From Haplodiscus bocki (lineage: Eukaryota), in the NCBI GenBank assembly GCA_965655095.1, contig OZ296657.1, forward strand, positions 45,384,001-45,448,000: DNA of 64,000 bases, given 5' to 3'. The notes under the pieces were generated by a model. That model was not told the origin of the DNA. It saw nothing but the letters and a program-made list of their open reading frames with translations, and searched no databases. Both the position numbers and the translations under genes were made by a program. How positions within the stretch are numbered: position 1 is the stretch's first letter; each line of letters opens with the position of its first letter. This document shows positions 7,094 through 48,189 of this stretch, one piece after another.

Positions 7094-7293
7094 NNNNNNN
7101 NNNNNNNNNNNNNNNNNNNNNNNNNNNNNNNNNNNNNNNNNNNNNNNNNNNNNNNNNNNNNNNNNNNNNNNNNNNNNNNNNNNNNNNNNNNNNNNNNNNN
7201 NNNNNNNNNNNNNNNNNNNNNNNNNNNNNNNNNNNNNNNNNNNNNNNNNNNNNNNNNNNNNNNNNNNNNNNNNNNNNNNNNNNNNNNNNNNNN
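7094..7293. other. Assembly gap (200 N)
   Basis: Run of N. Confidence 1.
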
Positions 7294-12300: not shown

Positions 12301-15300
12301 AAACCTGATTGATATGATAAAGAATGTTGCAAAACTAGGAGCTATGAGAGACAGCGTTTGAGAGTAAAGTGACAAAATGTTCTAGCACCTATTTCGGTTG
12401 ATTTTACTGATTTTTGCCAAAATGAGTAGGCAAAAACAGCTAACTTGACTGTCTTCTTGAATGCAAACAATTTCATTTTCTGTTGATTGTCCACCTCAGT
12501 TTTGGCATTCGCTATTTTTTCCAGATCCCCAGACAAAATTATCCATTGCACTTTGCCATAGCAAGCCAACTTTCTCACAATAGCCATAAACGATTCAACA
12601 AAGAAATGAGAATCACTGATACCCAGGAAAATTGACTGGTCGACCAGGTTTGACAAATTGGAGACTGAGATGGGAAAATGTTTTCTAATCGAATACGTTG
12701 TATTGGGGTCAATTAAGCTCTTTTCTCTACGTGAAACCATTCAACGTCAAGTATAGCTGAGTTTTCGAAAAGTATCTGCTGGTTCATGTTTTCATTTCTA
12801 AAAGAATCCAGCTTTTCAACAAGATTTGCCGTCTTTGATGAACGGATTTGATTAAACGTGTTCGAGCCGTTCACTGCATCAGGTTTAATATTGTTCCTCA
12901 TTGGCTGTTCTGTTGAACGAGGTGGCACATGACGGTCAACTAAATGCTGTGGAGACAGCAGTATTACTCATCTCATGACAAACTTCTTTCTATCTCAGTA
13001 GCCATACACAATGTTTTTATTTCCCAACACTTCAACTAACAGTTCAACTATAACGTTTTCCATCCACAATGTTTTTTCCGTAAATGCAAATTTTGCAGCG
13101 CTGCAGATCCTAAACAACTGGAAAAAATGTTCACCTAAGCATCTTGAGACTATTTAAGTTTGCATTCATAAAAATGGTGTCGAAGAAACGGAAAAATTTG
13201 GAAGTTTCCTCCAATTTTTGGTTACAATGCAAATCGAGAACGAACGCTCTAAGGAAACAAAATTTAGTTTTCAAAAGTTGTCTTGTTTTTCTGAAAAAAG
13301 TGAGACAATTAACTGTTCAATTCTTGAAAATGTTTCCTGCAAAATTGCATCTGTGCAACCCATAGGCCCCTTCATGAGTAAATCAACAAACACAACTAGG
13401 TTAATTCGTTTGTGGAACCTCCACTTTGTGTTTTTTCTTCAACAGACATTTCTCTTACTTCTGTTTTGATCAGAACTTCTTCATACCATCATCAGTACGC
13501 ACATGTTTTGATTGATTTAGTTAAGAAATATTTTCGTGTGCGTAGAAAATAATAAAACGCTAGCTTCTTTCTTTTTCAGAATGAATACAACTGCAATATT
13601 CACGTTGGCTGCACCATTCCTTATTCTGAAGACGTGATTGAGCATTTTGTCCACAATTTTCGTACTATGTGTTTCAGTTCTATATTTCGAATTTTTGACT
13701 TTCTCATTTTGAGTCCCACAGACAATATTAAAATGCTGACAAGGATTACATTTTTTCTCGAAAGTTTTTGCTGTAAGGGTCTTCTATTTTTGGAGACTGA
13801 AGAGTTACTTCCTGATCCGCTTTGTTTTCAAGTTTTGTTGTTCAATTTCGACTGGACGCAGTCAATTGAATTTTGAAGAGCTGCGACTGAATATTCGACG
13901 TGTTAAGGTATCAGTGGGTCTCAATGAACAATTTTTCTTCGCGACATGATAATTCAATTAAAACAGGGAGGTTGTTGAGGACTGAGGTTTTTTGTACAAT
14001 AAAGTGCTCCAGGTGAGCATGTGCCTTTCAAATTTGTTTCTTGTAGGACGTGCTCCAAAATTTACACAAGTAATGCTTTTGTTGCGGTTCGTAAATGAAA
14101 TCTCACTATTGCAAAATTGCAAAATCAACAAATTTTTCGATATAATTGAGACTAGTTGTAGAGTAACCAAGTGAAGGCTCCCAATGCAAGTTTAATATTA
14201 ACGGTTAATCAGTTACAGAGGACTGATAGTTTTCATTTCTTTCTTATATAATTACCCTGAGAAGTCGAAAAAATGAACTTCACCAGTTAAAAAACACTTT
14301 GTATTGAAAGAACAGGAAGAAGAACCTTTTTTGCCTGAAAACAAAGAAATCGATTAACATCAACCAAATCTCTTATCTCTGATACCAACTACCAAAAGCG
14401 ATAACCTTTCAACAATGTCACACAAAGATGGACTGTATCGATGTCAATCTGTCTAAGAAAAATAAGCAAGTGAAACATTTCCTTAATTTGTCGACTGTCT
14501 GTGAGTGAACCAATCAAGTGGAACGATTTATAGTTCAAGTGACGACAGCTCCTCCGAAAGAAACAAGTAGAGTGAACCTTTATCCTCTCAAAGGTAGTGT
14601 TTCGCCTAGAAAAGATATGAGATCTTTGACGAAGAACCGATGAGTATACAGTGTGAAGTGTTGTCATTTTCAATCAACTGTATTGTAAAGGAGCAAATAG
14701 TTGGTAACAATCAGCTGTTGAAGCCAAGACACCATCTACAAATTGAGTTTGTTTCCTTCTTCATACCTCGAGACACGTTTTCATTGTGTATAAATTGAAA
14801 CTTTTCCTTATTTCACTAATTGACAAATGGTTGGACTGACATGTTTACATGGGAAGAGGTTCGATTTTGGATCAACAACACAAAAAATTCTGCGTATATG
14901 CAAGATCTCTCCCTCTACATCAATTGTCCAACCTTACAAAAAAAACATTTTTAAAAGATTTTCTGTCAATGGTAGAAAAACTTTTGAATCTCTGTAATTT
15001 GATTTTCGGGATCACTGATTTCGGAAGGAGTCTAGCCTTCAAATGGCAACCAAAACGCTTCAAGTAGTTCCAGTTTTGACTCGAAGTTTGCAGAACGGAG
15101 TTTGATTTTATCTACACACGATTACAAGAGATTTCTTTTACCTAAAAGTCACCGTGTTGAATGCCACGATTTATAAAACCCGAACCGGTTCATTACCCAT
15201 ATTGTGAAGATGAATATGTAAATTGTTCTGATAGCAAAAACCAATTTTCAAGACTTAATGGGAGAACTAGTCACACACTGTTTCACCTACCTTTGGGTTA

Positions 15301-16020
15301 ACTACTTCCGTACACTATTCAAAAATCAATTGAGCGGTTATATCATTACAAGGAATGGTGATGCGTTTGACGATGTGCAGACAACTGTTGAGTTCAATCT
15401 ACAAAAGAAAGGAATGAAAAGAATGACGAGGAGTGCCAAGAAGTTACTTTAGGGAAAAGCCTTCAGCAAACACCTACTGCACTCTTTCCAGTGGTCAGCA
15501 TCAACACAAACAAACAAATCGGTCTTTGCAGCGGGATGCTATCAAGCCAAATGGATTAATTCTGATTAGCAATCGATGAATTTGCAACACTGTTTTTTTT
15601 TAATCTATATGGATTTTTGATTAAAAGTTATTGCCTTCGGGAAAAAGACTTTCTACGTTGAGTTTGTTCTCCCTTCCTCACATTTGATTTTTTCTTTCCG
15701 TTCAGAGGACTTTGCAGGTCAGCCACTCTTGGGTACAAATTCTGAGAGTCTTACAAAAACTACTGTGTAAATACGAAGTAATGTTCACAATTGCCCAAAA
15801 TCAAAGACTAATGTTTTGATGCACAGATAAGCCGATAAAAAGAAAGCTGATCTGGCAGAACATGATAATTTGAATACACAACCTTAATCAATATCTGATT
15901 TTTTTTACAGAAAAATCGTGCACAGTCTGACACGTTACAAAATCTTCGATTAAAAATATGTTGCGTTGTGAAAAGATTGATCCAAAATCAGACACGATGC
16001 ACAACTTTCGGCTCAAGATC
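9400..16020 (-). repeat. Left arm of a large inverted duplication (Polinton-derived)
   Basis: Reverse complement aligns with about 17240-23300. ORFs 12342-12740(-) and 20022-20219(+) share HFPISVSNLSNLVDQSIFLGISDSHFFVESFMAIVRKLAC. ORFs 13634(+) and 18848(-) are near-identical. Confidence 0.9.
9560..14150 (-). pseudogene. Protein-primed family B DNA polymerase (Polinton/Maverick/adintovirus-like) remnant, copy 1
   Basis: Minus-strand remnants in PolB order: TSETKRRFPYECFD (about 12130), TIVSIDACQLHP (motif A, about 11610), QLLAKRSFGYQLMDR (motif B, about 10680), ELDPDSLY (motif C, about 10395). Heavily frameshifted. Confidence 0.75.
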
Positions 16021-25760: not shown

Positions 25761-28529
25761 GGATGCTTGTTTCCGTTGATGAGACGGAACAGAGGAAAGA
25801 TAGAATACGACTCCGCTGTTGCGCGAGACACTGGGACAGGATACATTTTCATGGAAGTCAATGAACGTTGGGCATCATCTCCTTTCGAGTGGGCATCATC
25901 TCTTGATCATATTTCGCCGAGACATAAACAAGACGGCTCCTTACCATTTGTAGTACTGGCAAAAACTGTTTGTAAACTAGAAAAATCAATATTTCGTCAA
26001 TACGTTGAAACCAGTTGTTGTTTTCATCAAGATATTTTTTCCAGTGGCACCTTTGTCTTTAGAAAACTGTTTTGGAGTGAAAATTTAAAAGACCGCTTTA
26101 GAGTATCACAAACTGTAGAGGAAAGCAAAGGATCCCACTTCTGTAACATGTCTACATCGTCACTATCCGACAACTCAATATTAACCAAAAAAAGTTTTCT
26201 TATTGATTGATGGCACTTCTTTTACAACAAGCTTTTCTTCGAAAGCTCGCAATGTTCTTGCACAAAACCGAGTGATGTCATCGTTCACAAAAATTATAGG
26301 GCTCCTCTGAGCCGTCGTCCAATTTCAGCACCTTCCTCTTGGCTTTGTCCGAGCTTTGACTTCCTGTCTGACAATTTCAGTCACGAGAAGTCTGAGGCCA
26401 GCTAGGCGAGATGGGAAGCGATGAGCGAAGCTGATGTCCCCTTTAGAAAAGCTGTTTTCAACTTTAGCTGTAACTATCCTCACCGTTCCATAGAGGTCTC
26501 TGGCATCCTTTATGAAAACTGCAGAGTTTTTAATACCTTTAAACCGTCCGTACTGCTCAATACACCTTGATTCAATTTTGTACGGTTAAATTGTAACACC
26601 ATTGCCTGCCAACTGCAGACATTCCACTGCTTAGGCTCGACAAAAGCCACAAAAAACTGGGCGTGAGAAAATGATCTTTGTTATATCTGAGGGCAGCCAC
26701 GCTAGTGTCTACGCAATTCAACTGCCATAACCCATTCCTGGACCAGTGCCTTCAACTTCATGCAATCTACTATCATTCGAAGACGTTGATTTACTTCTGT
26801 GATGAGAAAGCTTTGAATTCTATAAAAACATGCAACACGTTTTTCTCAACAATTAGTTTGATTGTAAGGTAAACGCAAATCTCCGAACACACAATCTTTT
26901 TGCTTCCGAATTCCGCAACTCTAGACTGCCGTCTCTCCGAGGTCAGCGTAATTAAGTTTCTTGATCTCTAACTCTCAACTTCATAAGAATACTAGTTCTT
27001 TAAAAGTGCGCGGTGTTGCCTAGTTTTATGGCACCAAAAGGGATTGATGGTCTGAAAAAAAATCCAATTGGTGCTGAGAAACTTTTTGTATGATTACCAA
27101 AAAGGAACTAATTTCTAAAGTTAGAACTATGTCTCCTAGTAGTATTCGCCAGTTTTTTAAACACTGTTGTGTCAGTAAATCAAAAGTTACTTCAAGGTTT
27201 TCTGCAACGTATATGTAAGAGAGAGCAAAAAAGACCAGAATATGAATAAATGTGAAGCGTATAAAGCAACAATTATGTTAAAAAATGACAAACTGGGAAG
27301 CAATTCCTCGTTTCAACTAAATGCTGAAGTGGGATTCAGCTTATTTGCCCCGTTTCTAATGACTTGTTTGAATTTTGTTCCTCAAAAAGCCAACTTTAGC
27401 TCTCGAAAATCCCACAAGTGTTAATTTTTAAAACATTTGCATATGATGTTGACTGAAGCAAAGCACATCAGTGAAAAACTCTTTGTCTTTCTGCTGTTCT
27501 CCTTGTGATCTTGCTGCTTTTCTGATAATGTTTTGAGAACCTTTTGAAATAGTTTCACGGCAAACCTATCTGTTTCAACTCGGTGATGTCTGTCACTGAC
27601 TTTTTTTATCTTCCTATGATGAGCTTCTAGAAAACAGCGACATATTCTTGACAATAAGTCTATACTAACGGTCAGAGTGGCCTCACTAGCATGTCAGTTT
27701 TGCCAATTTTTCAAACTTTGTATGTTCTACGTTTCGCTCGTAAGTCAAAAGTTGATATTTACTTGATTAGTTCGAACGCTCAATGATTTAATCATGTCGT
27801 GTGCCTCGATTATAAGTCTGACTTTCTTCCCTTCATTTTCTGCACCATTGTGCACTGAACCTGCCTTACGCACAAACCAAACACAGCCATTCATAGCCTT
27901 GAACATATTGATTGTTTCTGGGCTTAATGTACTCAGCTGGAATCTTTTATATTTCCTACAGAAACCCACTTGTTAACGAAAGTCCACTCTAATCTTCTAG
28001 AGTCTTCCACAGAACTTGGGAATAACGGGAAGAATTTGAAAAGTTTGTTGAGCATTTATTTCAGATTTGAGAAATGAGTACGTTTCTTTACTTTTAGAGA
28101 AGAGTTAGCGTTTTTAAATGAGTTTTGAAGAATTGAGGCAAGAAAGCAGTTTGTCGACTCCTCCTTTGGCTGAAAAACACCTGATCAAAGACAATTGTTG
28201 GATGAAACTCGCCGTTATCAGGTAGGGTTATGGTTTTACTCGGATCACCCGTAAGAACCCGACGGATAGCTGTTTAGTTTAAACATACCCACTGTCTAAA
28301 CCCTAGAGTGGTTTTGCAAGAGATGTCGAACTCAACAGCCCGGATTTATGAGATGACACAGAATGATAATTTTATGGCCCATCGTAAATCTATCGTTTTT
28401 AATGACGTTTTAAGGATTTGCCCGAAGTACCTTATTTTAGGTATCCTTTTTCCAACGCGACAACAAAGCATGGGCCAGCGAGAAAATTGAACTTACGCTG
28501 ATGCCCGAGCTAGAACAAATTTCATTAGT

Positions 28530-29102
28530 TTAGTTTTTTTTGAAGCTGACAACGTCGTCTGCAGATTGGCATCCCTCGAGTTCATAAACACTGCGGGCGC
28601 CTGGGTCAGAAAGAAATCGGTGAGCCTGCTGTAGCCCAGCAAACGTTTTCTGAGTTTCTCCCTGGTCTGGGTGACACAATAGCTTCAGCTTTCGGAACCT
28701 CTTTATAACTGAATCTATTGCGGCGTCATTCGTCAGCATCAGCTGCTGGTACAAATTGAGATAATCGCCCATTTTTGTTGCCTTGTCGCGAGTTTTCAGC
28801 TCACTATTGAAGGTCGCAACAGTGTCTCGCTGGTTTTTCAGCTGCTTGAGCAAGCTTCGAGAACGCTCCTTCTGCTCATCAAGTGCTTCTATCGCTGCGA
28901 TAAAATCGGCTGCAGCACTCTGCAACTTTGCCTTCAGGCTAGCGATTACTTTCAACTGTTGTTCAAGCGTAAGCTGGTGCTGATGGGCTTCGTCCTTTTG
29001 AAAGTGCAGTTGCCCCTTGCTGACTTCTGCTTTCCTCTGAAGGGATGACACTTCCTGTAGAACAGCTTCTACTTGAAATACCTGGATTTTACGCTCGTTC
29101 AT
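28530..29102 (-). CDS. Coiled-coil + C-terminal J-domain (DnaJ-like) protein carried by the Gypsy element
   Basis: 190 aa open frame: heptad-rich N-terminus, then NLYQQLML..AAIDSVIKRFRKLKLLCHPDQG..KTFAGLQQAHRFLSDPGARSVYE. HPD at 28665-28673. Confidence 0.8.
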   Translation of the reverse strand: MNERKIQVFQVEAVLQEVSSLQRKAEVSKGQLHFQKDEAHQHQLTLEQQLKVIASLKAKLQSAAADFIAAIEALDEQKERSRSLLKQLKNQRDTVATFNSELKTRDKATKMGDYLNLYQQLMLTNDAAIDSVIKRFRKLKLLCHPDQGETQKTFAGLQQAHRFLSDPGARSVYELEGCQSADDVVSFKKN

Positions 29103-29656
29103 TAGGGCAACATTCTGTTCCCAGACAGAAGCAAAACTTGCCTCTACTATTTCTGCCCCCTAAGCAAACAACAGAAGATGAAACGTCACAGCAACTGCAA
29201 CATTTTGGGCTGTACTTTGGTTACCGTCAACGCGGAAGACACTTGCTTTCATCTTTGATTTGACTACGAAGACTTTGGGGATGTAGTAAACAGTTTCGCT
29301 AATTTTGGGATAAATATTTAATCAACAGAGAGTTCATAAAACAAAACAAATACACCAGTGTGATTTTGGTGGGTATGTAACTTGTTGTTGACAATGGATA
29401 GACATCTCCAGTCTGTAATTTGTTAGGCGAAGCCCGCTCGAAGGAAACAAATCTTTCGACTTCAATTTTTAGGGAAAAGGTGGAATTCACCTTTTACCTA
29501 ATTTTGGAAGTAACCACACTTCCTGCGTTCTACCGGAGTAGGTGAATCACACCTACAAGTTTTTTTCCTTCTTCTTGTCCAGAAAGTACACAGACCTCGA
29601 TTAGTCACTCCAGTTGTTCTTTCTCGAGAGCTCGTCTTCAGTTCTTCAAGGTAGCA

Positions 29657-30180
29657 TTATTCATATACTTCTATGGTTTTCTCATCGTTCAAAATTGAAA
29701 AGGCTCGGTGCATGGTTTTGAATTGGTCTTCGCAACCTCCGACATCCGGATGGGTTATAGCAGCCAATTTTTTGTAGTTCATTTTAGTTGCATGTAAGTC
29801 AGCGTTTTCGTGGACGAAAAAAATCTCATACAGCTTGGAAGGTCTTTATAAAATGTTTTTTTTTGTTTTCTTACAGGAATCAATGCCTCTGTAACTCTTG
29901 CGTTGCTTCTTTCACTCTTTACAAATATGCGTTGCGTGTCGATGTTTTCCGTCAGTCTTTTTTTGTTCTACCTCGTAGGGCTCTTACATGGATCTCAAAT
30001 TCCTGAATTCGGCGCCACTCTTCGTCGTTTCCTACATTGATTCGCACCACTGCCGACATTAGCTGCTCTTCTAATGCCTCATTTTTTAATTTTGAAAGCT
30101 CCAACCTCTGTCAAAGCCGGATCAATTGAGCTGGAGATGCATCAATTTTTGACTTGATGTTTCGAGGACTCAAAGCATCA
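29657..30180 (-). pseudogene. Second J-domain ORF (disrupted; absent from the ORF track)
   Basis: Manual translation: MNYKKLAAITHPDVGGCEDQFKTMHRAFSILNDEKTIEVYE*, HPD at 29744-29752. Upstream charged region broken by stops and frameshifts. Confidence 0.75.
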
Positions 30181-30498
30181 CCGGGAGCCATTATCGAATG
30201 CCCGGAAATGCATCCCCGTACCCGGTAGAGTCCGGGTGCTGCTTTTGATTTTTTGGGCTAGAGTTCAGGTAAATAATAGACGTACTCATTATTGCGTCCC
30301 TCAGCAAAATCTGAACAAAACAAAATCTATATTATGTGCGATATTTGACCGACTTTATTTCCAGCACCGGTTTATGTTCTCCATTCATATTATTAACCCT
30401 TTCAGCAGTCGTTCTGTTGGTTTTCTGACACCATAATAACTTCGTTTTTCCGCTGACCGTTATCTCGTTTCATTTCCCTGACCTCTGCCAGGTATTGA

Positions 30499-32280
30499 TT
30501 ATACTCGTAAAACGGGTTCAACGGCTGTACAACTTCCCTGTTGTTCGAGCTTGATAATGAAGAAAAGTTTTATGAAAAAGCGTAACATAGTACCTAACAA
30601 TGTCTGAGTCACGATAGTTATTGCAATTTCCCTGGCAGTCCACAAAAGCAACAATGTGTCTTTTTCCACTGTTTCAAAAACTTTGGATGCAGCCCAGCTG
30701 AAACCTAGCTGTCGATATGGTATATTGAAATGAAAATAATGCTCGTGAAAGTTTTGGTCCTGGGAACCTAGGTATACCACTGTCCATGCGATAATTGTTC
30801 TGCTATGTCTCCGAGCCCTCGCTCGACTACTCCGCTGAAGATCGTCCCTTGTGAACAGTCCCATCTCTTTCAAACCGATCAAATGCTGGGGTCTCATTTC
30901 TTGTCTGGTTTTTTCGTAAATTGACATTGGTCTGACGCAGGGAATCTTGAGCTTCTCACCGAAAGTAATCCATCTGCCGTTCCAGAGTCTCATCAAAATA
31001 GGATAGAGAGGATTGCACTCAGTCAACGTATAATTTTGCTGAAAGACTTTTGTGATGAGGTTCATATTTTTTGGCATCGTTTCTTTGCCATGCCCCAATC
31101 GGACCGACACTTCTTCACTGTAGGAACCAATTTAAACATTTGTAATTTCCATTTTTGCACATCTATGACGATAAATTAATCCACCTGCCTTTTCGAGATG
31201 TATACCTTCCATTCCTACTCCCCATACTGCCTTGTCTAACTAAAATGTTCAAAAAGGTTTCAATTGAGATCTTAGTTGATCCATTTGACAATTTTGACAA
31301 ATCACTTCAACGCAGATATCTTCCATTTCTTGTAACCCGCTCAAATAGACAAGTTCCAACAGACTCTGTATGATTATTCTCTGGTCCCGCGTGTTATATT
31401 GTGCTTTGGGTAGATCCAGTAACTGGAAACTGATATACATACTCTGAACGAATGTCGGAAAGATAATTCTATTGAACCATTTGAGAGGTTCATTGTCGAC
31501 CTCAACGGCAAAACGTTTATCACATTTTGAACTAACGAAACGCATCAGTAAACTGCTTTTTGCTTCGTCAATTTTTTTGCTTCGTTGTCTTCCGTGATTG
31601 TTACATGTTTCGACCAGACGCAATTTGTGGTGTTCCGCCTCAAGTACACCACAAAATTGTGATCGAAATACTTTGGTAAATTAGACATCGAAATATAAAT
31701 CATGAAAAGATTCTGCCACATAAAGAAAAAAACATCCGCGTGGATTGCCTTTGTGGCGTACAACTTGCCCATTGTCAGTCTCCTATTGATTAACACAATT
31801 CTGTTGATAGTGTCACCTAGTGGTGTAATCCATTCCACAAGCTAAACATAACCTATGCCACGCCTTTTTTCTTTCATAAATGTAGCTGAAGAATCAAAAG
31901 TCTCAAATTTTTTCGTCCTGGCCTGTTCCACTTTCCTATTTTCGGTTGAACTGAGTTAAAATTCCTCTTTTTAAACCCTAGTAGTTTCAGTTTGTTTCCA
32001 GCACATACCGATTGGCAACTGTCAATTGGTATCGGGCGAAATCTCGGTAGTGTTTTCGGTTCTCGGTGCAAAAAAAATCCTTCTTCGTATACGTTAGATT
32101 TCTTGATTTTTGCTACTGTGTACGAAGCCTGGGATTTAGATTGTCTCAACTCTACTTCAAGATTGTTCCCATGGAGGAGGATTGTCACGTCAGTTATATT
32201 GGTACTACTCCTCGAAACTCGAGAGCTTTGTTGTTGGTTACTTAAGGATAAGAATGACCTTCTTACGATTTGCTCCAAAT
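30499..32280 (-). pseudogene. Accessory ORF remnants between integrase and PPT of the Gypsy element (unknown function)
   Basis: Co-oriented ORF pieces of 134, 97, 124 and 203 aa downstream of pol. No family recognised. Confidence 0.4.
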
Positions 32281-32899
32281 CATATCACACTGTCTAAATT
32301 CCATCGCTGAGCGCGAACTCGCTGCAGACAGACAAAATTAAAATCAATGAGTACAAGTAAAAACCTTGTTTGCCTAAATTTGCTTCTTTCTCCATTGTTA
32401 ACACTCACTTGCTTCGTGAACCAAAAACATAATCGTTATCACCGTCATCATCATCGTCATTATAGACGAAATAGTCGCCAAACCGTTTCAAAACCCAACG
32501 GACACTCTCAATTTTTTCTCTAAGCAGTGGTACGGACTTCTGCCTATTTTTTCCAAAACGGACTTTTGCGCACCTGCTCTAGATTTTCCGAACCCTTTAC
32601 ACTTTTCTTCGCCAGTGGCAGTACTGATGCTCCAACTAGAATCTTCGGTAGTCCCAGCATATTGGATTTCGTTCTGCTTGTTTTGGGGTGTGCATTCCTT
32701 TATGTTTCTCCCTTCTGTTGGCACCCTGTGTTTTGCGGGGTTAGGCAGTACTGTTTCTTTTACCTCTGTCTCGATAAAATCGTCATCTGTTTCCTCCACT
32801 GAAGAAGACGTCTCCTGTTGCTGAGACCTGCTAACAATTTTCATTCGCAAAAAAACTATTCTGGAGTTTTGTACTTCTTCAATCTATCGTAACGCTTTT

Positions 32900-35800
32900 T
32901 AAAATATTTCATTGTGCCGTCATAACAGACACGAAAGTTTGGATTGCTATTAATTTCTACGATAGTGTAGAGTTGCTTGTAAAAACAGGTGAAATCTTTT
33001 TTTTCTCTTTTTCCACAGTCGGCCAGAAAACAAGGACCTGCTCTCCGTCACTGTACGTTGGAGAATAAGTACGATAATCGTAATATGTCTTTTGGTGAGT
33101 TTGTTCTACCTCCTTTTCTGCTCTCACCAAGTGATGTTCCCTCTACGTTTCTCTCTTCGTATTGAATTTGAAACCACTTGATGTCGCAAAGATTTTTGTC
33201 TGACGTGTCTTGTACATACAGTTAAGAGGTAGTCTCAAAAGCGTTCGTAGCACCACGTGGGAAGGGGTACATTTGGTCACTGCGTGAACTGAAGTGCGGT
33301 AGACCATCAATACCAGTTAAAAAACATTTCCATTCATGCTGATGTTCATCCACATACTTACGGAGGCTTTCTCCCATGTCTTGTTCGTCCATTCAATCAT
33401 TGCAATTCCGTTCGGGTGAAAAGACGTGTTTGAAGTCCTTTCAATGCCAAGAATCCGACCAAGTTCAGGAAAAAATTCAGACACGAACTTCGTTCCCTTA
33501 TCACTTTAGATATTGACAGGGCAGCCAATTTTAGTTATCCACATTTCGTACAAAGCTCGGGCAACTTTGTGTGCCTCTTGATTTGGCACCTCTACGGCCT
33601 CGTATAAATTTTTTAACTGATCACCATTTAAGAAATTCTACTTATACACCTCCGAAACAGGCAAGAACCTCATCATGTCTAGCGATACTTGCCAGAAAGG
33701 GTCACTAGGCTGAAAAGTTGTGAGACTGTGTCTGTGTTTTCTAGCGTTCAATTCCTTCTCAGTCGTTGATCACAACTGTCAACTCAGTTCCGCAGATCAC
33801 GTTTCAAGCCAGGCCAGAAGAAACGCTTCTGAGCCCTGTGACATAACATTTTGATACCAAAATGCCAGCACACGGATTTTCATAGAGCCGAAGTAGAATA
33901 TGCGGAATTTGGGCGTGAGGAACGATAAATTGCTGCGTTATTTGTCTAATTTTCTTCAATTTTTTCTCTTCCTGTAGAGAAGTCCATCAATGTTTTCTAA
34001 AACTTTAAAATCAACCCAGAAGTTCCAGATTTTTTTGAGGACCCCGTTGTTTGCCGCCTGTCGGGTATCTGTTGTCTTCCTTGTTCCAGCCGAACAAAAA
34101 TGTTAGCTAAATTTCTATCGTGCTTCTGTTTCATTCGGTTCTTTTACGGTCAGCGTCTTGGATCACCTGCCATGGATTAGCTCTAGCGTTTTCAGTTGCT
34201 ATATCGCTTTTTATTGAAACGGTCACAAACGTCGTTATGCCACTCTCTGCGGTTTGAACTCATGACAGACAATCAGCATGAATTATGTCTTTTCCAGCGT
34301 TATGGCTTATTGCGAACTTAAACTACCCCAATTGTTCAAGCGATTTTTCAATCATACCTTCAGGATCTTTTAAACTATACAGCTACACCAATGCTTGTTG
34401 GTCTGTGACAATTACAAACTTCCGACCCGGTAGCTAAGGCTTGAAGCGATTCCTAAAGTGAACCACAGTAAAAAGCTTACGTTTTTTTGCAGAACAGTTC
34501 CTCTGACTTTTGTTTAGAGTCTTGCTGGCTCATGCAATAATTCTGTCGACTTCTTGCATTTGAGTCAAAACTGGACCAATGCCAGTCAAGAATGCATTTG
34601 TGGATAATGTGTCCCCATTGCAGTTGTTTGCGTAGCCGTGGACGGGCGCTGACAGAAGTTGCCTCTTCAACTCTTACAGTGCATCTTCGCACATTTTTGT
34701 CAAAAGAAGCTTGTTTTTCCTGCTTCAGTAGTTGGTATAGAGGTTCTGAAGTATTCACAAAACACGGAATAAACTTCCTATAAAAACCAACTAACCCCAG
34801 CGCTGCTAATTTTTTTTTCAAATTTCTTGTTGATTTCATTTTTTCTTCGGCTGCCATTTTTGTTTGCTCCACTTCTGCTCCTTTTTCTGACACACATGCC
34901 CCAAAAACATGAAATCTTTTCTGGAAAACTTTACATTTGGAGCCTTTCGTCTTGAGACCGCTTTTCTCGAGTCGCGCAAACACCTCCTCCAAACGTAGTA
35001 AATGCTCCTCAAACATTTTTCCAAAGACAATTATGTCACCTGAATACACCTGGCAACATCGTAAGAATGACAACTGAACACCATTTCCATTAATATTTGG
35101 AATACTCCAAGTGCAGATGCCAGATCCATTGGTAATCGTTTCCACTTGTAGAGTCCCATTGGACTAATCAAAGCCGTCAACTTTTGGCTTTCCTCATTCT
35201 AAGCCATTTGAAATTATCCTGGCGTTGAATCAATGCTCGTGAAAAACATATTGCTTTCCAAAAAAAGAATCACGTCATTGATTCTTGGAAGAGACAACAT
35301 GTTTATCCGATTTGTTTGTTAGGTCCATGGTGGTCTACAACCAAACGGTATGTCCTATCGTTTTTGGGGACCAGTGTTAGAGCGATAAGATCTGCTTCCG
35401 CTTGTCCTTCCACACTTTTTTTAATTGCTTTTGTCTTGTCAAAACTTATGTTACCGTGAGCCTGACGAAAAAGTTATCGTCCTATTATAATTTGATTTGG
35501 TTTTCTATCTGATAATTGAAACCCAAGTTATTGCCATTCGTGGAAAAGTTTTTCTCAAAAATTTGACAAAAACTCGTTAGTTTCTTCATTTTCGATAAAA
35601 TCATGTGCTGGCGATCAATTCTGACGTACTTCTTGAAATCGAATTTTTCTTTTTCGGCGTTTTTTGATGGTTCTGTTCGTACAGAAAATATTTGGTGCTC
35701 AAACCCAAATGTTTCAATGATCCCGACCGCGGATTTTTCTATGTAACATTATCTTCATTATGAGACTCTATGAATAGTACCCAACAAGATCCCGCATTAT

Positions 35801-36327
35801 CTCTAATTAAGATTTTTGCTACCCTTTACTCACTTGAACCTTGGGAAGGTTCGACTGGAGTTACCATTCCTTCGAAGCTGTAAATTTTCGAACCGTCTTC
35901 GTTTCCTATTGCGCATTGCAGTATCTTGTCGCTTCTAGCTGGAACTTCTTGTGTTGAGACTAATGTCAAGTACGTTGAGTAATTGGTATTTGGTCTTTGA
36001 TTCAATGGTAACTTTAGGCATATATTCCCACGGAAGAGATTTTTTCTTGGCATACAATTTGCTATCATTTGTGGTCAGATAATCCAACCCCACCAGAAAA
36101 TGAACTGTGTCTACAGTCGATAATAGGAAATCGGCCCGGAACTCATGTGCAAATTTCACTGATTGAGCTATAAGCTCTCCTTTTCCTTTTACAGGCATTG
36201 GTGTACTTTTCGCTGTCAGATATTTTTCCTAGTAGACCTCCAAGGCACCACTGAACCCCAGTGATTGCAAGAAAATCCGGCTAACTAATGACGAACTGCC
36301 GCCGCTATCCACAATTGCAGAAGAAGC
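32900..36327 (-). pseudogene. Gypsy pol (protease-RT-RNase H-integrase), disrupted
   Basis: SSAIVDSGGSSS protease (about 36300); VYSGDIIVFGKMFEEHLLRLEEVF...LGLVGFYRKFIP RT (ORF 34477-35145); FVIVTDQQAL RNase H; KRFFWPGLKRDL, SDKGTKF and FHPNG integrase. Confidence 0.9.
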
Positions 36328-37920
36328 ATACGAAGGAATGAGGAAAAGCTTGATAAGCACGAGGAGCGATATCGAAGCTTGCTTGAGCAGCTGAAAATCC
36401 AGAGAGACACCGTTGTGACCCTAAATCGTGAGCTGAAAGCTCGCGACAATGCAACTAAGTTGGGCGATGTTCTGGGTTTGTAGCAGCGGGCTCACCTATT
36501 TCTTGCAAACCCAGATGGTCACATGGTTTATGAACTCGAGGGAAGCGAAGCTGCAGACGACGTTCTCAGCTTCAAAAACAAAATATAAACGTTTGAACTT
36601 TGTTTTCGCTAAGGCATCAGCAGAGGATTAATTTTCTCGCTGGCCGCTGGTTTGTTTTTGTTTTCTTGTTTTGCTGAGATAAGGCCAACGTTTTTATAGG
36701 CTACTTAAAAAAATACATTGGGAAAATCTACAGAACGTCAATAAAAGCGGTCGGCCATAAAACTATTTTCTTGTGACTTGTCATAAATCTGGGCTGTCAC
36801 GTTCGACAGCTTTTGCACAGTTACTCTAGGGTTTTGACAGTTGGCATGTTTAAGCAAGAGAGCTATCCGTTGGGTTCTTACGGGTGAGTTGAACAATACC
36901 ATAATCCTACCTGATAACGGCGAGTTTCACCCAACCCTTGTAATTAGTGATGAAGTGTATACAAGCCAAAAGAGGAGTCAGTTTTTTGCTTTGTCAGTTG
37001 ATTTGAATCCTTCATTTTTCATTTCAGCACGCTGACGCTCTTCTCAAATTAAGGAAATCTATTCATTTTTTTTCCTGAATTATTCTCTCAGGAGACTCTC
37101 CACAATTTTATTGTTTTTCCAAAGTTCTGAGGACGACTATAGCGGTGAAAAAAGTCATCAAAATCAAATGTCATCCGAATCTCAGCCTCATTTCTACTTC
37201 GCCTCCTGAATCGCAAATCGCATCTGCATCGCATATAAAACTTTCGACTCTATATTTTAAACTCTGTGAGTAACCTTATTGAATCTTTGTTTCCTTCTCG
37301 GGATTTTTGAAGTGACGCCCGTTCAAAGGAGGAAATAAATTTGGAAGGAGAAGCTCAGGAAAACGCAATCAAAGCAGAAAGTTTGAGGAGCGGGGCAGAC
37401 GAAATAGAGGGCGTACCGGTTACAGGGAGGCAGATACAAAGACCCAACTCCCGGAAGATCCCCAGGACGGCGCGAACGGTCACTATCTCGAGAGAAGTTT
37501 TCTGAACCTGATTGTAAAGTGAGAACTCAAAGTGATAGCTGACGCAACTGCAGTCAACGAGGTCACTGTACGAGAGAGTCAAAAAATTCTTTCAAGTGTG
37601 AAAGTTCACCATTGAGAAAATATTGCCCGTTTTTAAACTGAAGAAGGCTGGTGTCGAGATGGCCGCAAATTTTCCTACCAAAACTAAGGCCATGGTATGA
37701 ATGACGAGAGAAATGAAGTCAACGACAACGCAACCGTTATATGCGACGCTGCTGATACAAGGCAAGTTGGCTTCTGCGTTGGTGGATAGCGGCAGCAGTG
37801 TATCATTATTTAGCTGGATTTTCTTGCAATCTCTGGGATTCAGTGGTGCATTGGAATGCTACAAGTTAGAACTTCTTAAAGCAAACAGTACATCAATGCC
37901 TGTAAAAAAAACAAGAATAA
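36328..37920 (+). mobile_element. Second partial copy of the same Gypsy family: partial 5' LTR (with HPD-deleted J-ORF), leader/gag remnant, protease start
   Basis: 36350-36590 translates LDKHEERYRSLLEQLKIQRDTVVTLNRELKARDNATKLGD..AHLFLANPDGHMVYELEG, homologous to ORF 28530. 36600-37160 is the inverted homologue of 27971-28530. ORF 37701 has ASALVDSGSSVSL. Confidence 0.8.
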
Positions 37921-38299: not shown

Positions 38300-40050
38300 T
38301 TTTAATTTGCTGAATCACTTTTCCTATTAATTTTTTGCATGTGCTGAATCTTGGGTCCCAGACACAGTTTTACACCCTGAAGAAGCTCTAATTTCGTCAC
38401 ATCCAGACCTTAGAGTTCAACCGAAATCTTTGATAAACTTTGGCTTGATTTTGTTGAGTTGCTGGATTTATTTTTTTTGTTCAAACTATATTGTTGGCAT
38501 ACGATAGACCCAATTCACAAAATTTCCATCGCAGGTATCGCAAAACAAGTATATGTTGATTATTCCAAGGCGTCAAAAGTGACTTTTGTAGGTACGCATT
38601 TCATGTGATAGGGATCCATAGAGCTTCCACAGTGAATTGCTGCGTCTCCTACCACACACGACCCCGTGGGTTTCCCGGTTCTACGATTTATCCTACAGAA
38701 AAAAATGGTTCCTTTGATGAAGTAGTCCCACATTTGTACTCCAGAAATTGCTACCACACGATAACTTTTATTCAGGAGTTATCCGTCATCGAATGATCTT
38801 CCTTTGAGATGTTGCCCTAGGAAGAACGTTTTTCTCTGTTCCTCAGAGATCTCTTCTTTCGAAGTAGCTACAGATCCATTTGAACTTTGCAATGGGCCTA
38901 TTGCGCAATCTCTCAATTGGAATACATGTCGAAATTATTGCTGAAAATCCATGCCTTTCCTGTAACTTAAGTTAGTTAAAGTTTCTCGCATCCACTCCGA
39001 CGACTTCTCAGATGAAAGGCACTTAAACTCATCTTTCGGAATATTAAGTCTTTCTCCATTCAAGTAATTGAAACAGTACTTAACATTGTTTCGGAGAGCT
39101 CTGAGTTTTGCACTTTTTTGAGATAGATTTTCAGACCAGAAAAGTTTGCTATGTCTGGAGATTCTTTTATAAGGAATGGCCCATCGTGTTGCTTCGGTAA
39201 TGTCGTCAAGTACACTTCTCCACTGCTCTATGGCGCTTGGGCATATAACTGCCTCAAGTGATGCATGCCATGGTATTCCTAACACGTTCTGCCAGGCTTC
39301 CCAGTCTGCTTTCTGCAACCACGGTTTGGAACTTTCTTCTTCCGTCATCCTACTTAGATTACATTTCACTATTAAAGGTATATGTCCACGTTGCGGCGGT
39401 CCCGTGAAAAGTTCGATATTTGGGTCAGTTGTCAGCTCGAGTCCTACGTGCGTAGCAGTTCTTCCACTTGCAACGCATAGATCTATAACACTCGAACCAT
39501 TGGATGACAGAAAAGTTGCTTCTCCGTTATTAAGGATGTTGTCTTCAGCAGAAAGATTTTCCAGAAGCAGATAACCGTTTGGATTACATATACTATCACC
39601 ACACAAGCAGTGTCTAGCATTTCAGTCTCCCAAGAACAACACTCCAACAAGGTTTTGCTGATCGTAGAAGTTTACCACTTTTTCTCTCTGTTCTTTAACT
39701 TTTTCCCTCAAAAAGGTTTCATTTGGTTTCAAGTATGCAGTACCGATTATAATCTCGGGTCCAGTCACCACCGTCAAAATCCAAATGATGTCATAGTCTT
39801 TCAGTTCAAGTTCAATTAAACGAGTCAAACTCAAGTCCTTACTTTTTATGATAGCATCGCCATCACTTCTCACACCACAACATGTTGATTCCGTAAACTA
39901 ATTTGCAGCGAATTCTTTATCTAATTTTCGTTTTGTTCCGTTGAAGCAAGAGATTGTCGGCTTATGTGTCTCAAGGTTGTTTTTAAAAGTCAGCCTCCTA
40001 TGCTCGGCAACGCCACCAATATTCAGCTGAATGAAGGCTAAATTTTTGTT
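38300..40050 (-). pseudogene. LINE ORF2: AP endonuclease and truncated RT
   Basis: FIQLNIGG start, GTAYLKP, FLGD*NARH..CNPNG, LNNGEATF..SSVIDL, RGHIPL (SDH position), LQKADWEAW, KLFWSENL. Confidence 0.8.
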
Positions 40051-41215
40051 AGTCAGTATGAGGAGTGGATTTTTCCAGTTCCCTAGATATCATAACTGCT
40101 TGTAATTGCTTGATGTATACATCACATTGGGTATAGTTGGCGGGGTGTTTTAGATTACACTTCGCACATTTGCTTTCTTGATTTTTGTTGGGGCAGTCCC
40201 TAAATAAATGATTTTCACTGCAGTGTCCACATTTCTCAGCTGATTGACATTTGGCACTGATGTGATCAAATTTATGGCATTTGAAGCATCTGACAATCTG
40301 TATCCCATTTTGCACGAAAGCTATTGTTTTATAATAGATAGAGTCGGGGAAAAGCCCTGGCTGCAGATCTTTTCCAAGACCTTTTTCAGACGTCAGCACA
40401 ATTTTGACTGTCCCAACTTTTGTCGAGTCTCTCATTACGAAAAGCGTTGCCTTCGTATCTGTGAACTGAGTATCCAAACATCTTTCAATCATTTCATCGG
40501 TAACGTCCAGCGGAACCTTCTTGATGATGACAGCACGATTTGTCTTCTCCGTTGAAATAGCTCTTCTAATCATCGTTGAATCAGCTAGAGACTCCGGTTT
40601 CTATTTCTCGAAAACTTCGTCCGCTTCTTCCCTTGACACAAACGCTAAATGAACGTTTCCTCTGGCTGTGTTGAGTACATGAATTAATTTTTTAAGTGGA
40701 AAAAGTTTAGCAAACTCTTTCTTGATTTGTATACTGTCTCTGAAGTTGAAGGTACTTGAAGCTATCAAAATGTGTTCAGGATTGCGTTGCGGAGTTAGGC
40801 AATTTTATGAGCCAGTTTGTAAGGTATGACTCGTTTGCCCCAGTGCTCAATCATAGCTTACTCCAGAAGTATTAGTTTGCGCTTGTGTTATTTGCTTAGC
40901 AGTTCTTTTTGCTGCTTCGTGTACTTCTTTAACAAGTTTTTCTGTAGTTTTGTCATGCTTCGCAATGGTTTGCTTTACTAGGTCTCTGACAGCTATCACT
41001 TTTTCATCAATCTCCGCTCTAAAGTCGGTAAGTTCCGTCTGTATGGTACTTTTCACTTAACAGCGAAATTTATCACAAAACCACATTGCGCCTTCTATTT
41101 GTTCTATCAATTCGATTTGCTCCTTGCAAACTTTTGCGTAGTGCTAGTGTGTCCATTTTTCGCATGCATGAGAAAAAAAAGATGGATCAGTGCCAATCAG
41201 ATTTGTGCAATTGAG
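40049..41215 (-). pseudogene. LINE ORF1 (PHD finger, coiled coil, three CCHC knuckles), disrupted
   Basis: RCFKCHKFDHISAKC / KCGHCSENHLFRDC / KCAKCNLKHPANYTQC in ORF 40049-40573. Coiled coil 40847-41056. PHD remnant HACEKWTH..GAMWFCDK at about 41070-41200. Confidence 0.8.
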
Positions 41216-44200: not shown

Positions 44201-45456
44201 GGAATTTTTCAAAGAAATGGATGACTTTTTAGCAGCGAGAATTCCGTCTACGAAATTCGTAAATAAATAATTTGGCGGGCTTTAAATTACTAATTTAGGA
44301 ATGTATTCCGTATTTTGATCATGCACTGACTCATTTATGTTTTTTAAAAGTCACCGATCGGTGTAAAACTTCCCATTTAGATGTCGGAAGACGAGAGTTG
44401 CATGGAGCAGTTGGAGGCGGTGGCGGCTGAGGAAGATACGATGAACTGCCGCCTCCAATGGAGATCATCGCATGGTGGGCAGTTTGTGAATCTCATTGAA
44501 CAGCATCCGCGGAAAGCCTCTTCTACCTCCACCTCTATCCACTCGTGGACTACTAGTACTCAGTATTCTTTGTGAGTATTCTAACCCATCAATTTTTTAT
44601 GAATACGAGGCATAATTCAGTCAATTCACACTGAATTGAATTATGTATATTGATCGAGTCTAGCAAGTTTTTGGGCTAAAAAGTTCATTATCGGTGCAAT
44701 GCAGTAATCTAGTCCCTTGAAAGCTACTTTGACTTACAGTGGAGGTCCTTTACTCTCTTTCACTTGCCCAACGCCCGTGTGTCATTGGATTTTACCCAAA
44801 TCGCACAAATTGGTGTTTTCATTGCTGAAGTTTTGTTAGAAAGTTACCGCATCCGGTACAACTACCGAGCGAAAAACCTTGAAAATTAAATTCATTCTTA
44901 ATGAATTGATTATTCCTGTGTTCCATTTTCGCTTTCCTGGTTGTGCATCATTCCTTGTTCACTCATTCCTGCTTTCATTTCACTCGCTTTCCAATCCATC
45001 GTTGGAACAAACGAGAACCAATTAGAGTTCTCGGCTCTTTTCTTATCCACTGACGTCATTTCTATTCTGAATAACAACAACTGCAGCTTATATAGTGAAC
45101 AAAATATGCTGTTTTGACTTGTTCAGCTCCTCTCTTTGTATCAATCTCTACTAAAGACGACGTCACGTCGAGAATCCGAGCTGTTCAACGTTGATTTGAG
45201 CAAAATGACGTTCTCAGTTACTATAATATAGTAACTGCTTCTGTTTCTGCTTGTTCATTCGTTTGGAGCGAGAAGAAGGCTGCCCGTGAAAGTGCCTCGA
45301 GTCTAGAAATCTCAAAATTCGACCGCGCAATGAGAGTCTGGGAAGTTGTCTGAAGTATATCGAACTCATGGGGTGCGAAGAAAGTGTTTGAGGCGCTAGG
45401 TCTTCGCAGAATGTTAAACCTCCTACGTTGAGTTTTTTGAAAAAATCTCCGAAAGT

Positions 45457-45486
45457 ATCGCTTCTCGGCCTTTTGGCTAAGATCAA
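45457..45486 (+). ncRNA. U2: U2 snRNA, 5' fragment (nt 1-30), interrupted by retrotransposon
   Basis: ATCGCTTCTCGGCCTTTTGGCTAAGATCAA matches the conserved metazoan U2 5' end exactly. Confidence 0.95.
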
Positions 45487-47629
45487 CAACTTTGTGCCTC
45501 GTTTCCTAGAATTTCTGCACCGAATGGCGGCCATAGGCGAAACGCCAGATGTCTGGAGGAGATATAACACGATGCTCCTCTTCAAGAAACCGAGCGAATA
45601 TGTCCCGGGTCAAGAAAAGGTCCTGAAAAACTTCCGCCCCATTGCCCTATCGAATGTTTCATACAAACTCCTGGCAGCAATGCTCTGCAAACGTTTGGCA
45701 AAATGGTTGGAAGCCAATAAAGGGATTTCTTATTCGCAACGAGCAGTATTCTCAAGAAGAGGTGTACAGGAGAATACCTTAACAGTTGCCGAGGCACTGC
45801 GGGCCAAAAAGACAGTCATCTATCTGGACCTCAGCGATGCTTTTAACACGGCTGAACACCCCCTACTTCTCGAAGCCCTCAGACAATCCGGATGCCCGAA
45901 GTGGATAATGGACATCATCGCGTCGGTATACCGGCACTGCATAACCTCACCTGTAGACCTGTTTGGAAAGAAACTTGCTGGTGACGTACCTGTTTCTCGC
46001 GGGGTACGACAAGGATGTCCTCTCAGTTCACTACTCTTCAACCTTGTACTCGACCCAGTGTTGCAAGCTGCCTCTGGTCCAGGATCCTTTTGCCTAGGAT
46101 ATATGGACGATATTGCAATCATCGTCGATAACCCAGAAGACGTACCGCAAACACTAAGCCGAACAGTTGAAGTCGCCCAATCGCTAGGTTTCTCATTCAA
46201 CATCTCCAAATGTGGAATTGCCAATTACTCAAAGGAAGTCATGATAAATGCCTCACCCATACCGAAAGTAACTGACAGCAGAGCCTACAAATATCTCGGC
46301 ACAGAAACCTTTCCCAATACAACCGGTGGTCTTGATGCCTGTTTGCAGACAACATGGGAACTCGCAGAAAAGATAGAAGTGTCCGAGCTTACTCCCATGC
46401 AGAAAGTCCATGCTATACGAACAAAGGTGCTGCCCATGATGTATCACCTGGTCGAAAACTCACACACCACTCAAGAGAAGCTGCACAACATCAACAAGAA
46501 TCTACGAAAAATGACCAAACGACTGTGTTATCTCCCAGAACGAGCCTGTAACGCTTATGTCCATCTTCACCGCATGTATGGAGGGCCGGGCATACCTGAT
46601 TTTGTTGTCATGAAAGCAAGCTTGACCCTCAACGCGTTTATGAGAACCATGAATTTGAAGGATGACCTCGGTGTTAAGGTCAGACGGCTGATCCTCAAAA
46701 ATCAAACCTTACCTGAGCTCATAGAGACAATCAACAATGGAGGTCCAAGGGTGGGACTTTGCTTGCTTGCGAGAGAAGTGTGCGCAGCAAAGACACGAAT
46801 ACAGAAGTTCTTGAATAAAGACCTGACGTATCAGTTTCACGAATCAGGCGCTCTCGTGATGTACATCGACAACATGCTGTACAAGGAACCGGACCCCACT
46901 CTCAAACAATTAATCCGGAAACAAGGCCTCAAGAATCTCTGCAGCGCATCTAACCAAGGACGGTATTGGCAAGCACTCAGTACGAACCCATTCACCAGCA
47001 AGCTAATGTACAGTTTCCACACGAGAATGTGCGATTGGCGACACACGCATACAGCAAGATTGAATCTTACCCCCCTCAAAGCAAGCTTCAATTGGAGTAA
47101 CCGACGCGATGAAGCCTGCCGAAGATGCCAATTGGGTCGCGAAACTTTAAATCATGTCTTGAACAATTGCCCAGCCCATCGACGAGAAATAATACAACGT
47201 CATAACAACATTAGGGACAACTTTATTGAAAAACTCCCGAAAAACTTGAAGATTTTTCGCGAGCAACGTTTTGGAAACCTCCAGCCCGATGTAATTGTGG
47301 AAGATACCAAGAACAACAAAGCTTACATACTCGACGTTAAAGTATCTTCCGAGGATACATGCCAGTTCGCGGAAAATGAGTATCGCGTAAAAGAGAAGTA
47401 TGAACCCTTGCGACGAGCATATGAAATCAGAGGTACTCCGGCAACAACTTCTACAATACAGCTTGGCTGCCTCGGCTCCATAGCAAGGTCCTCTTGCAAC
47501 ATGATCCAGAGACTTCTCGGCAACAAGAGAAATGCAAGACGCCTCATTATTGAGTTCTCCTGTTACACCACACATACAGCCCGAAATCTCACAGTTCAAT
47601 TCTTCAGCGGAAAGGTGCAGAACTCGTAG
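45487..47629 (+). CDS. Reverse transcriptase + CCHC knuckle + restriction-like endonuclease, N-terminally truncated
   Basis: Uninterrupted frame with NFRPIAL, YLDLSDAF, GVRQGCPLSSLLF, YMDD, YKYLG, GGPGIPD, CRRCQLGRETLNHVLNNC, RHNNI, QPDVIV..ILDVKV, KEKYEPL. The first ~20 aa of the track ORF (from 45428) are flanking DNA and U2 sequence. Confidence 0.92.
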
Positions 47630-48033
47630 CACAAAACGGAACAAAACTCTTTCTGTACACCATGTTAGCTCACAGTGCGCGCAACCAAACAGTATTTCAA
47701 TTTACTGGCCAAAGGCAGACACAATAGCAATCTTTCAGAAGGGAGCCCTGTCTTTGAAGTTCCATCCCAAAAAAAAAGAGAAGAAAAATCCACAAAATCA
47801 ACGCACCCGAATTCCGCAAATACTTTGCAAAACACGGGCCCCCTGTTGGTTAGGTATGTGGATGGGGTAGCATTGGATGGGGGTGGCTGCCCCACCCGCA
47901 CGTGGCTCAAAACAAAAAAAAAACACTCTTTTTCTGATTTCTCGCTACTATTTGTAAATAGTTATCTATTTGGACACCGTCTGAGGTGACATTTGACCAT
48001 GTAATATCATTATTTATGCTAATTCAAATCTTT
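45487..48033 (+). mobile_element. 5'-truncated RLE-type non-LTR retrotransposon inserted in U2 snRNA (Utopia-like)
   Basis: Flanked by U2 nt 1-30 on the left and by U2 resuming at TATCTGTTCTT on the right. Single RT+RLE ORF and about 400 nt 3' UTR. No TSD or poly(A) seen. Confidence 0.9.
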
Positions 48034-48189
48034 TATCTGTTCTTGTCAGCTTAATATCTGGCATGCTAGGCACCGCCTAGCTCCAATATTAAACTGATTT
48101 TTGATCCTAGATCTTGACAAAGAAGCTTGCTTCAGTCGGATCACGGATTGTCCCGGTCTTACACTACCGCCGGGTACGGTCCATTCCCC
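48034..48189 (+). ncRNA. U2: U2 snRNA, 3' fragment
   Basis: TATCTGTTCTT; stem IIa TGTCAG/CTGGCA with pairing preserved; stem IIb GCTAGGC-ACC-GCCTAGC; Sm site ATTTTTG (about 48097); GAAGCTTGCTTC in stem III; CCCGGT-CTTACACT-ACCGCCGGG stem IV. Confidence 0.93.

Follow-up and report, generated by a model that had tools for sequence, protein, structure and literature searches.

What are two genes for Hsp70 co-chaperones doing behind the pol gene of a retrotransposon? The question is raised by a stretch of 64,000 nucleotides (nt) from Haplodiscus bocki (GenBank assembly GCA_965655095.1, contig OZ296657.1, positions 45,384,001 to 45,448,000 of the forward strand; hereafter the window), in which an earlier note, made from the letters alone, had seen two J-domain genes, here called J1 and J2, in a Gypsy element. 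The locus holds a dead copy of a Ty3/gypsy element of the env-carrying, endogenous-retrovirus-like kind, truncated at its 5' end. This decayed copy belongs to a family with the gene order gag-pol-env-J2-J1, and we consider it probable that the J genes of the family encode the element's own Hsp70 recruiters, with the Gag shell or ribonucleoprotein (RNP) as their favoured target.

Both J domains were recognised by Pfam. The DnaJ family (PF00226, curated cutoff 27.8 bits) matched the open reading frame (ORF) of J1, 190 amino acids (aa) in length, at aa 116-174 (E 2.2e-10, 40.9 bits), and a 62-aa piece of J2 (E 1.8e-10, 41.2 bits). Each domain contains the His-Pro-Asp (HPD) motif, in the form CHPDQG in J1 and THPDVGG in J2. 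The six-frame translation of the window holds eight HPD tripeptides, of which these two lie in a J-domain context and the remaining six have no J-domain surroundings. In a phmmer search of the PDB, the top match was DNAJB8 for the J domain of J1 (E 1.1e-5) and the J domain of Sis1 for that of J2 (E 1.6e-6); for both, the nearest solved structures by sequence were of the cytosolic Sis1/DNAJB/DNAJA type. The two co-oriented, HPD-containing J-domain genes of the earlier note are therefore real, and they are paralogous.

The locus was annotated by tblastn of the intact proteins of a relative, contig L006, onto the window (Table 1). As found in the window, J1 and J2 are pseudogene remnants. J2 had been correctly described as disrupted: it carries four in-frame stops (30260-30258, 30113-30111, 29848-29846 and 29659-29657) and three frame changes (near 29960, 29862 and 29650). 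J1 had been described as an open 190-aa ORF with a coiled-coil N-terminus. The frame is indeed open but does not represent the whole gene, which starts near 29309: an in-frame stop (29162-29160) severs the N-terminal domain, which has no start codon of its own, and the 190-aa ORF restarts at an internal Met 3' of this stop. Such an ORF could be a domesticated gene serving the host, since it is the only open frame of the two J genes in the window and its HPD is intact. A domesticated gene would, however, have lost its N-terminal domain to the stop, and ORFs of 203 and 222 aa also remain open elsewhere in the same dead element, so that the open J1 frame is not exceptional. The sole relative of similar length among clusters at 90% identity (protein P0002 of contig L001, 55% identical) has its HPD changed to NQD, and the divergence of the window from L001 is independent of reading frame. 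We therefore regard domestication as very improbable.

On the minus strand the main element (element A) reads pol, env, J2, J1 and a sequence resembling a long terminal repeat (LTR). The J genes had been placed downstream of the integrase, which holds for the order but not for direct adjacency, because an env remnant that had been missed intervenes. The env pieces of the window gave no Pfam match on their own. The pol remnant is split into many short ORFs of at most 222 aa, and RVT_1 was matched in the ORF at 35145..34477 (minus strand). No direct LTR pair was found in the window; element A keeps only its 3' LTR-like sequence.

A second copy of the family, placed at 36350-36590, had been taken to carry a homologue of J1 and so to show that the gene travels with the element. 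The sequence there is J1-derived, but it comprises the 3' half only, lies on the opposite (plus) strand and has lost helices I-II together with the HPD through a 117-nt deletion. As a fragment without the J core, it makes a weak argument for cargo. Element A and a second truncated copy (element B) lie head-to-head, with a 137-nt inverted repeat in the protease (36187-36323 / 37771-37907), and the block of J1 fragment and LTR-like sequence is wedged between them, with a junction near 36324-36349. Two structures suggested by this arrangement were rejected. An LTR containing the 3' end of J1, as the block at 36342-37234 might suggest, was dismissed since the 5' LTR region of L001 has no J1 match, and the inverted arms that suggested a DIRS-like inverted-terminal-repeat structure are two truncated copies head-to-head.

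Better evidence that the J genes belong to the element comes from its relatives, which are metagenome or Logan contigs (ENA, Logan, JGI). L006, a contig of 10.1 kb, has all its five ORFs intact and co-oriented: gag, which contains CCHC zinc knuckles; a 1340-aa pol with Asp_protease_2, RVT_1, RT_RNaseH, Integrase_H2C2 and rve domains; a 668-aa env (6204-8210) that matches Monjiviricetes_fusion (PF24664, E 1.1e-15) and has a hydrophobic, signal-like N-terminal stretch and a C-terminal anchor; and a J2-type and a J1-type gene encoding proteins of 234 aa (DnaJ E 5.7e-14) and 243 aa (DnaJ E 3e-13). In L005 a pair of LTRs (452-813 and 11767-12127, 89-92% identity) encloses gag, protease-reverse transcriptase-RNase H-integrase (PR-RT-RH-IN), env and both J genes, of which J2 is intact and J1 has a single frameshift; Pfam matches include RT_RNaseH (E 2.7e-32) and the env family PF24664 (E 4.2e-10). 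Over 8.3 kb, from the protease across both J genes and on into the LTR, L001 aligns collinearly with the window at 72% nt identity; it also has a weak LTR pair of its own (72% identity). The order gag-pol-env-J2-J1 is common to L001, L005, L006 and L007, and the J proteins of intact relatives score 44-59 bits against PF00226 (E 1e-11 to 1e-16). The element is Ty3/gypsy by its PR-RT-RNase H-IN order, by the Ty3-type RNase H and H2C2 integrase of L006 and by the LTRs of L005. It is an env-carrying (errantivirus-like) Ty3/gypsy by the env genes of L006 and L005, of which the window holds only a broken remnant.

Two further features of L006 were recorded. Its ends (1-77 and 10024-10100) are identical over 77 nt, and the contig was most likely closed into a circle by the assembler, via collapse of two LTRs or from a 1-LTR circle. 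Between J2 and J1, at 9039-9200, lie three tandem 54-nt repeats, two identical and one at 72%.

Across the family, J genes occupy the same position at no fewer than six loci from at least five assemblies, in lineages whose pol identity falls to 47%. More distant pol matches (frogs, a rotifer and host contamination in clam-symbiont metagenome-assembled genomes) reach only about 30-40% identity. The number of J genes varies, down to one in a sister lineage and none in a more basal clade: in L009 one J gene comes after gag-pol-env, in L008 likewise one comes after env, and L010, L011 and L012 have gag-pol-env followed by a post-env ORF (ORF4) of 325-349 aa without a J domain. In ORF4 (L010:7742-8734, L011:7806-8855, L012:7634-8611) the N-terminus is rich in Pro and Ser and the tail is basic and contains Cys; a beta-rich segment and a coiled coil are also present. 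The coiled coil and J domain recur together in about 45 clusters (50% identity) among 1.84 billion representative proteins; many of them are decayed, and several are intact and divergent with the HPD kept. A close host DNAJ donor was not found in the same set, where matches outside the family covered the J domain only, with much weaker E-values.

To assess conservation, we compared the intact members. The HPD (H185, P186, D187) and 13 other J-domain columns are invariant in all seven of them (at least five lineages, 22-60% identity). K179 is invariant and in most members is preceded by R or K. Decayed copies have often lost the HPD. Between L006 and L007, J2 differs at codon positions 1/2/3 by 0.34/0.23/0.59, with proportions of nonsynonymous (pN) and synonymous (pS) differences of 0.26 and 0.83. 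Between L006 and the L005/L007 lineages, the J domain of J1 differs by 0.45/0.225/0.675, and pN is 0.275 for the C-terminal part of env, 0.18 for RT and 0.16 for gag. J2 is thus about as conserved as env, with a similar bias of change towards third positions. These comparisons indicate that the J genes evolved under purifying selection between lineages.

Taken with the gene order in L001, L005, L006 and L007, the LTRs of L005 and the invariant HPD, this codon-position pattern bears out the earlier proposal that a Ty3/gypsy element carries tandem J genes as its own cargo; the J genes are integral to the element family and intact in its well-preserved members. A one-off transduction, in which a host DNAJ fragment was caught by a single copy, or merely lies beside it, and plays no role for the element, would suit the window and L001, where the genes are broken and all have diverged neutrally. 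It cannot account for J genes at the same place in so many loci, including a fully intact element and a position inside LTRs, nor for an invariant HPD and a selective codon-position pattern across lineages this far apart. The distribution, the intact copies and the lack of a close non-element DNAJ relative exclude such a capture, which is the least probable of the alternatives considered here. The earlier note had named outcomes that would count against it, namely no match to the J domain by profile or structure, relatives lacking the ORFs, or a close host DNAJ; what we found was a match by both profile and fold, relatives with the ORFs and no close host DNAJ.

The history of the J genes was approached through two trees. 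In the pol tree the window groups with L006 and L007 (support 96/99), L013 joins next and then L009, and a branch supported at 100/99 sets the J-bearing elements apart from the J-less L010-L012 and the outgroups. Because the window enters this tree as a 222-aa piece that sits on a very long branch, its placement is less sure than the support value implies. A quick J-domain tree united 13 of 13 family members, with the J1-type and J2-type domains forming subclades (SH-aLRT 85, 73 columns), a grouping that is suggestive only. An ancestral post-env ORF4, with its beta-rich segment and coiled coil, would have gained a J domain once, and the J-bearing gene would then have been tandemly duplicated to give J2 and J1. 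A single gain by a post-env gene followed by tandem duplication is likely the simplest history, and the J genes may derive from the J-less ORF4.

The J proteins are about 230-250 aa long. A small beta-barrel forms the N-terminal part, about 90 residues of helix, a predicted coiled coil, come next, and the J domain is C-terminal. An AlphaFold2 model was built for J2 of L006 rather than for the window copy, with an alignment of family members as input (mean pLDDT 89). It comprises strands at 9-42, a continuous helix at 59-150, a four-helix J domain at 158-217 and a helix at 219-233. The J domain thus has the four helices expected of this fold, helix II being basic. Foldseek returned the Sis1 J domain as top match in the PDB (E 8e-5, TM 0.78) and also matched the DnaK-bound J domain 5nro_B (TM 0.82). 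A motif of roughly VYYxPExFxV...GVFRVEG..S..RKVA is conserved in the N-terminal domain, which belongs to no Pfam family.

No DnaJ_C or zinc-finger Pfam match and no glycine/phenylalanine (G/F) region was found in the J proteins. They are not class A or B DnaJ proteins, which they resemble only in the J domain itself, here C-terminal; the lack of a G/F region, zinc finger and DnaJ C-terminal domain would make J1 and J2 class C (type III) J proteins, in which a targeting module is joined to a J domain. In this they are like auxilin/GAK and other class C proteins, which have a C-terminal J domain, a separate targeting module and none of those three parts. Unlike auxilin/GAK, the family proteins have no clathrin-binding or PTEN-like domain, and the likeness is a functional analogy only.

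The earlier note had drawn a parallel with polyomavirus T antigens. It stands as a functional analogy: T antigens likewise are virus-encoded, use host Hsc70 through an HPD J domain, and share the HPDxGG form and a short loop before helix III. It does not extend to homology. The J domain of T antigens is N-terminal and fused to T-antigen-specific regions, whereas in the present family it follows the beta-barrel and coiled coil at the C-terminal end, and the top 50 Foldseek matches of the L006 J2 model among viral models were J proteins of giant viruses and phages, with no T antigen.

How might such proteins serve the element? The earlier note had suggested help with VLP/RNP assembly or interference with PIWI as possible roles. 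We propose that the beta-barrel and coiled coil bind a specific target, at which the J domain would trigger ATP hydrolysis by host Hsp70. The J-protein sequences show neither a signal peptide nor a membrane segment, so the proteins probably act in the cytosol or nucleus. Their target could be the element's own Gag shell or RNP and their job its assembly or uncoating, much as auxilin brings Hsc70 to clathrin coats; we favour the Gag shell or RNP as the most likely target, with modest confidence. The missing signal peptide and membrane segment, together with the residence of the genes in a selfish element, led us to rank Gag/RNP remodelling first, counter-defence second and a role for Env third.

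The Env role would have the J proteins bring Hsp70 to the cytoplasmic tail of Env or to membranes, in particle egress or entry. The J genes always lie immediately downstream of env, and ORF4 takes that position in the J-less lineages. An argument from gene order is weak by itself, however, and proteins without a visible signal peptide or membrane segment suit this role poorly. We find it doubtful, and more so than counter-defence.

A number of observations weigh against our explanation as a whole. Stimulation of Hsp70 by these proteins is predicted from their sequence. Synonymous sites are saturated between the informative lineages (pS >0.75), so we report only pN, pS and codon-position ratios and no dN/dS. 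Closer pairs are uninformative for dN/dS, as L003, L004 and L008 differ by one or two substitutions and J2 of L005 and L007 is 98% identical. Compared by tblastx, the window and L001 show about 50-55% identity in all three frames of every gene, pol included; this points to neutral drift of both copies, and the window itself is no evidence of function. The comparison of J-less ORF4 with the J proteins by hhalign gave a probability of 21% (E 0.001). Finally, a stand-alone AlphaFold2 model of the N-terminal domain reached a pLDDT of only 62, and the part of J1 made up of the N-terminal domain and coiled coil evolves fast, with a pN of 0.49 between L006 and the L005/L007 lineages.

Fast change in the target-binding part, set against the slower RT, is what counter-defence would lead one to expect. 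The J proteins would then divert or tie up host Hsp70, or a target of the barrel, against silencing or restriction, for example against chaperone-dependent loading of small RNAs. The architecture of a specialised recruiter agrees with this, tandem duplication and divergence fit an arms race, and the fold leads for the N-terminal domain are all SH3/Tudor/PWWP-like barrels. These leads are not significant, however (SH3/KOW/Tudor/PWWP-like barrels in Foldseek, E >0.6), and the conservation of J2, roughly that of env, would suit a structural or replicative role just as well. Counter-defence is possible but, in our view, unlikely, and remodelling of the Gag shell or RNP by recruited Hsp70 remains the reading we prefer.

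Env-carrying Ty3/gypsy elements are widespread in metazoans, with Chuviridae-like glycoproteins next to gypsy pol, and the same glycoproteins occur in BEL/Pao elements (Chary & Hayashi, eLife 2026, PMC13524379; Dezordi et al. 2020, PMC7642597). The family described here resembles them in its gag, PR-RT-RH-IN pol and LTRs and in an env from a negative-strand RNA virus lineage (PF24664) directly behind pol; it differs in having one or two further post-env genes that encode J-domain proteins. The survey in PMC13524379 sought env within 3 kb downstream of pol, and its text contains none of the words DnaJ, J domain, chaperone and accessory. A study of additional ORFs in the LTR elements of bdelloid rotifers reported neither a J domain nor a chaperone (Rodriguez et al. 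2017, PMC5408684). In the full-text literature searched, J domains were not reported for any LTR element or endogenous retrovirus, which is not proof of absence.

Accessory genes behind env are familiar from complex retroviruses and LTR elements, and walleye dermal sarcoma virus carries a captured cyclin between env and the 3' LTR. The post-env position and the retained cellular-type domain are shared with these accessory ORFs, whereas the cargo here is an Hsp70 co-chaperone domain. To our knowledge, virus-encoded J domains have so far been a feature of DNA viruses, namely polyomaviruses, giant viruses and phages. On balance it seems that a clade of env-carrying Ty3/gypsy elements encodes its own Hsp70 co-chaperones, as a single gene or a diverged tandem pair; these would be the first J-domain accessory genes in any reverse-transcribing element.

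Retroviruses and LTR retrotransposons depend on host chaperones, and a retroelement that carries, conserves and duplicates Hsp70 recruiters points to a chaperone-dependent step worth encoding. If this is true, the J proteins would offer a natural handle on chaperone action in retroelement particle assembly, uncoating or host evasion, and since they are small and modular (barrel, coiled coil, J domain) the step is directly testable. Surveys of env-carrying Gypsy elements that end at env miss this further layer of accessory genes. The family may also be an example of gene birth, from ORF4 through J-domain fusion to tandem duplication. What this means for the window is modest, since its locus is a dead copy.

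Table 1 Features of the decayed J-gene-carrying element and its surroundings in the window. Sequence matches were obtained with proteins of the intact relative L006 unless stated otherwise.
Feature	Position	Strand	Evidence or remark
3' LTR-like sequence, element A (approximate boundaries; outer end maybe ~27905)	27997..28449	-	matches L001:339-776 (upstream of gag) and window 36484-37142
J1-type gene remnant (N-terminal beta-domain, coiled coil, C-terminal J domain)	28530..29309	-	tblastn, L006 J1 aa 2-239, 29% identity, E 2e-27
Open 190-aa ORF, the part of J1 3' of the stop (coiled coil and J domain)	28530..29102	-	
J domain of J1 (HPD 28673-28665)	28581..28757	-	PF00226
J2-type pseudogene, same three-part architecture as J1	29604..30302	-	tblastn, L006 J2 aa 3-234, four pieces, 45-64% identity
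J domain of J2 (HPD 29752-29744)	29660..29845	-	PF00226
env remnant, viral fusion glycoprotein of Monjiviricetes_fusion type, hydrophobic anchor near C-terminus	30520..32284	-	tblastn, L006 env aa 41-628, at most 43.5% identity, E 3e-84
pol remnant (PR-RT-RNase H-IN), element A, 5'-truncated at about pol aa 30	32743..36345	-	tblastn, L006 pol aa 30-1240
Inverted J1 fragment, 3' half only	36342..36581	+	
LTR-like sequence behind the J1 fragment (approximate)	36582..37234	+	matches window 28530-27997 reversed and L001:404-872
gag C-terminus and protease start, truncated element B	37426..37907	+	tblastn, L006 gag aa 259-330 and pol aa 20-82; Asp_protease_2 weak

The window contains several other features outside this element. 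A full-length U2 spliceosomal small nuclear RNA gene lies at 48006-48189 on the plus strand (Rfam RF00004, 120 bits, E 7.7e-24). Upstream of it, at 45428-47629 on the same strand, is an intact 733-aa ORF of a non-LTR retrotransposon (RVT_1 E 2.5e-33) with a Cys/His-rich C-terminal part, whose relatives, at no more than 86% identity, were found in ENA contigs only. Two ORFs of 223 and 174 aa (38935-40573, minus strand) gave no Pfam match; the second has a CCHC-like Cys/His spacing, and by eye they resemble a non-LTR element. An ORF at 53090-53605 (plus strand) encodes a FLYWCH zinc-finger domain (E 3.2e-12). Runs of N occur at 7094-7293 and 59070-59388, the second flanked by repeats of 80-100 nt, and a large inverted duplication (10575-15990 / 22279-17259) has a 3.4-kb core of 86% identity with flanks of 67-79%.

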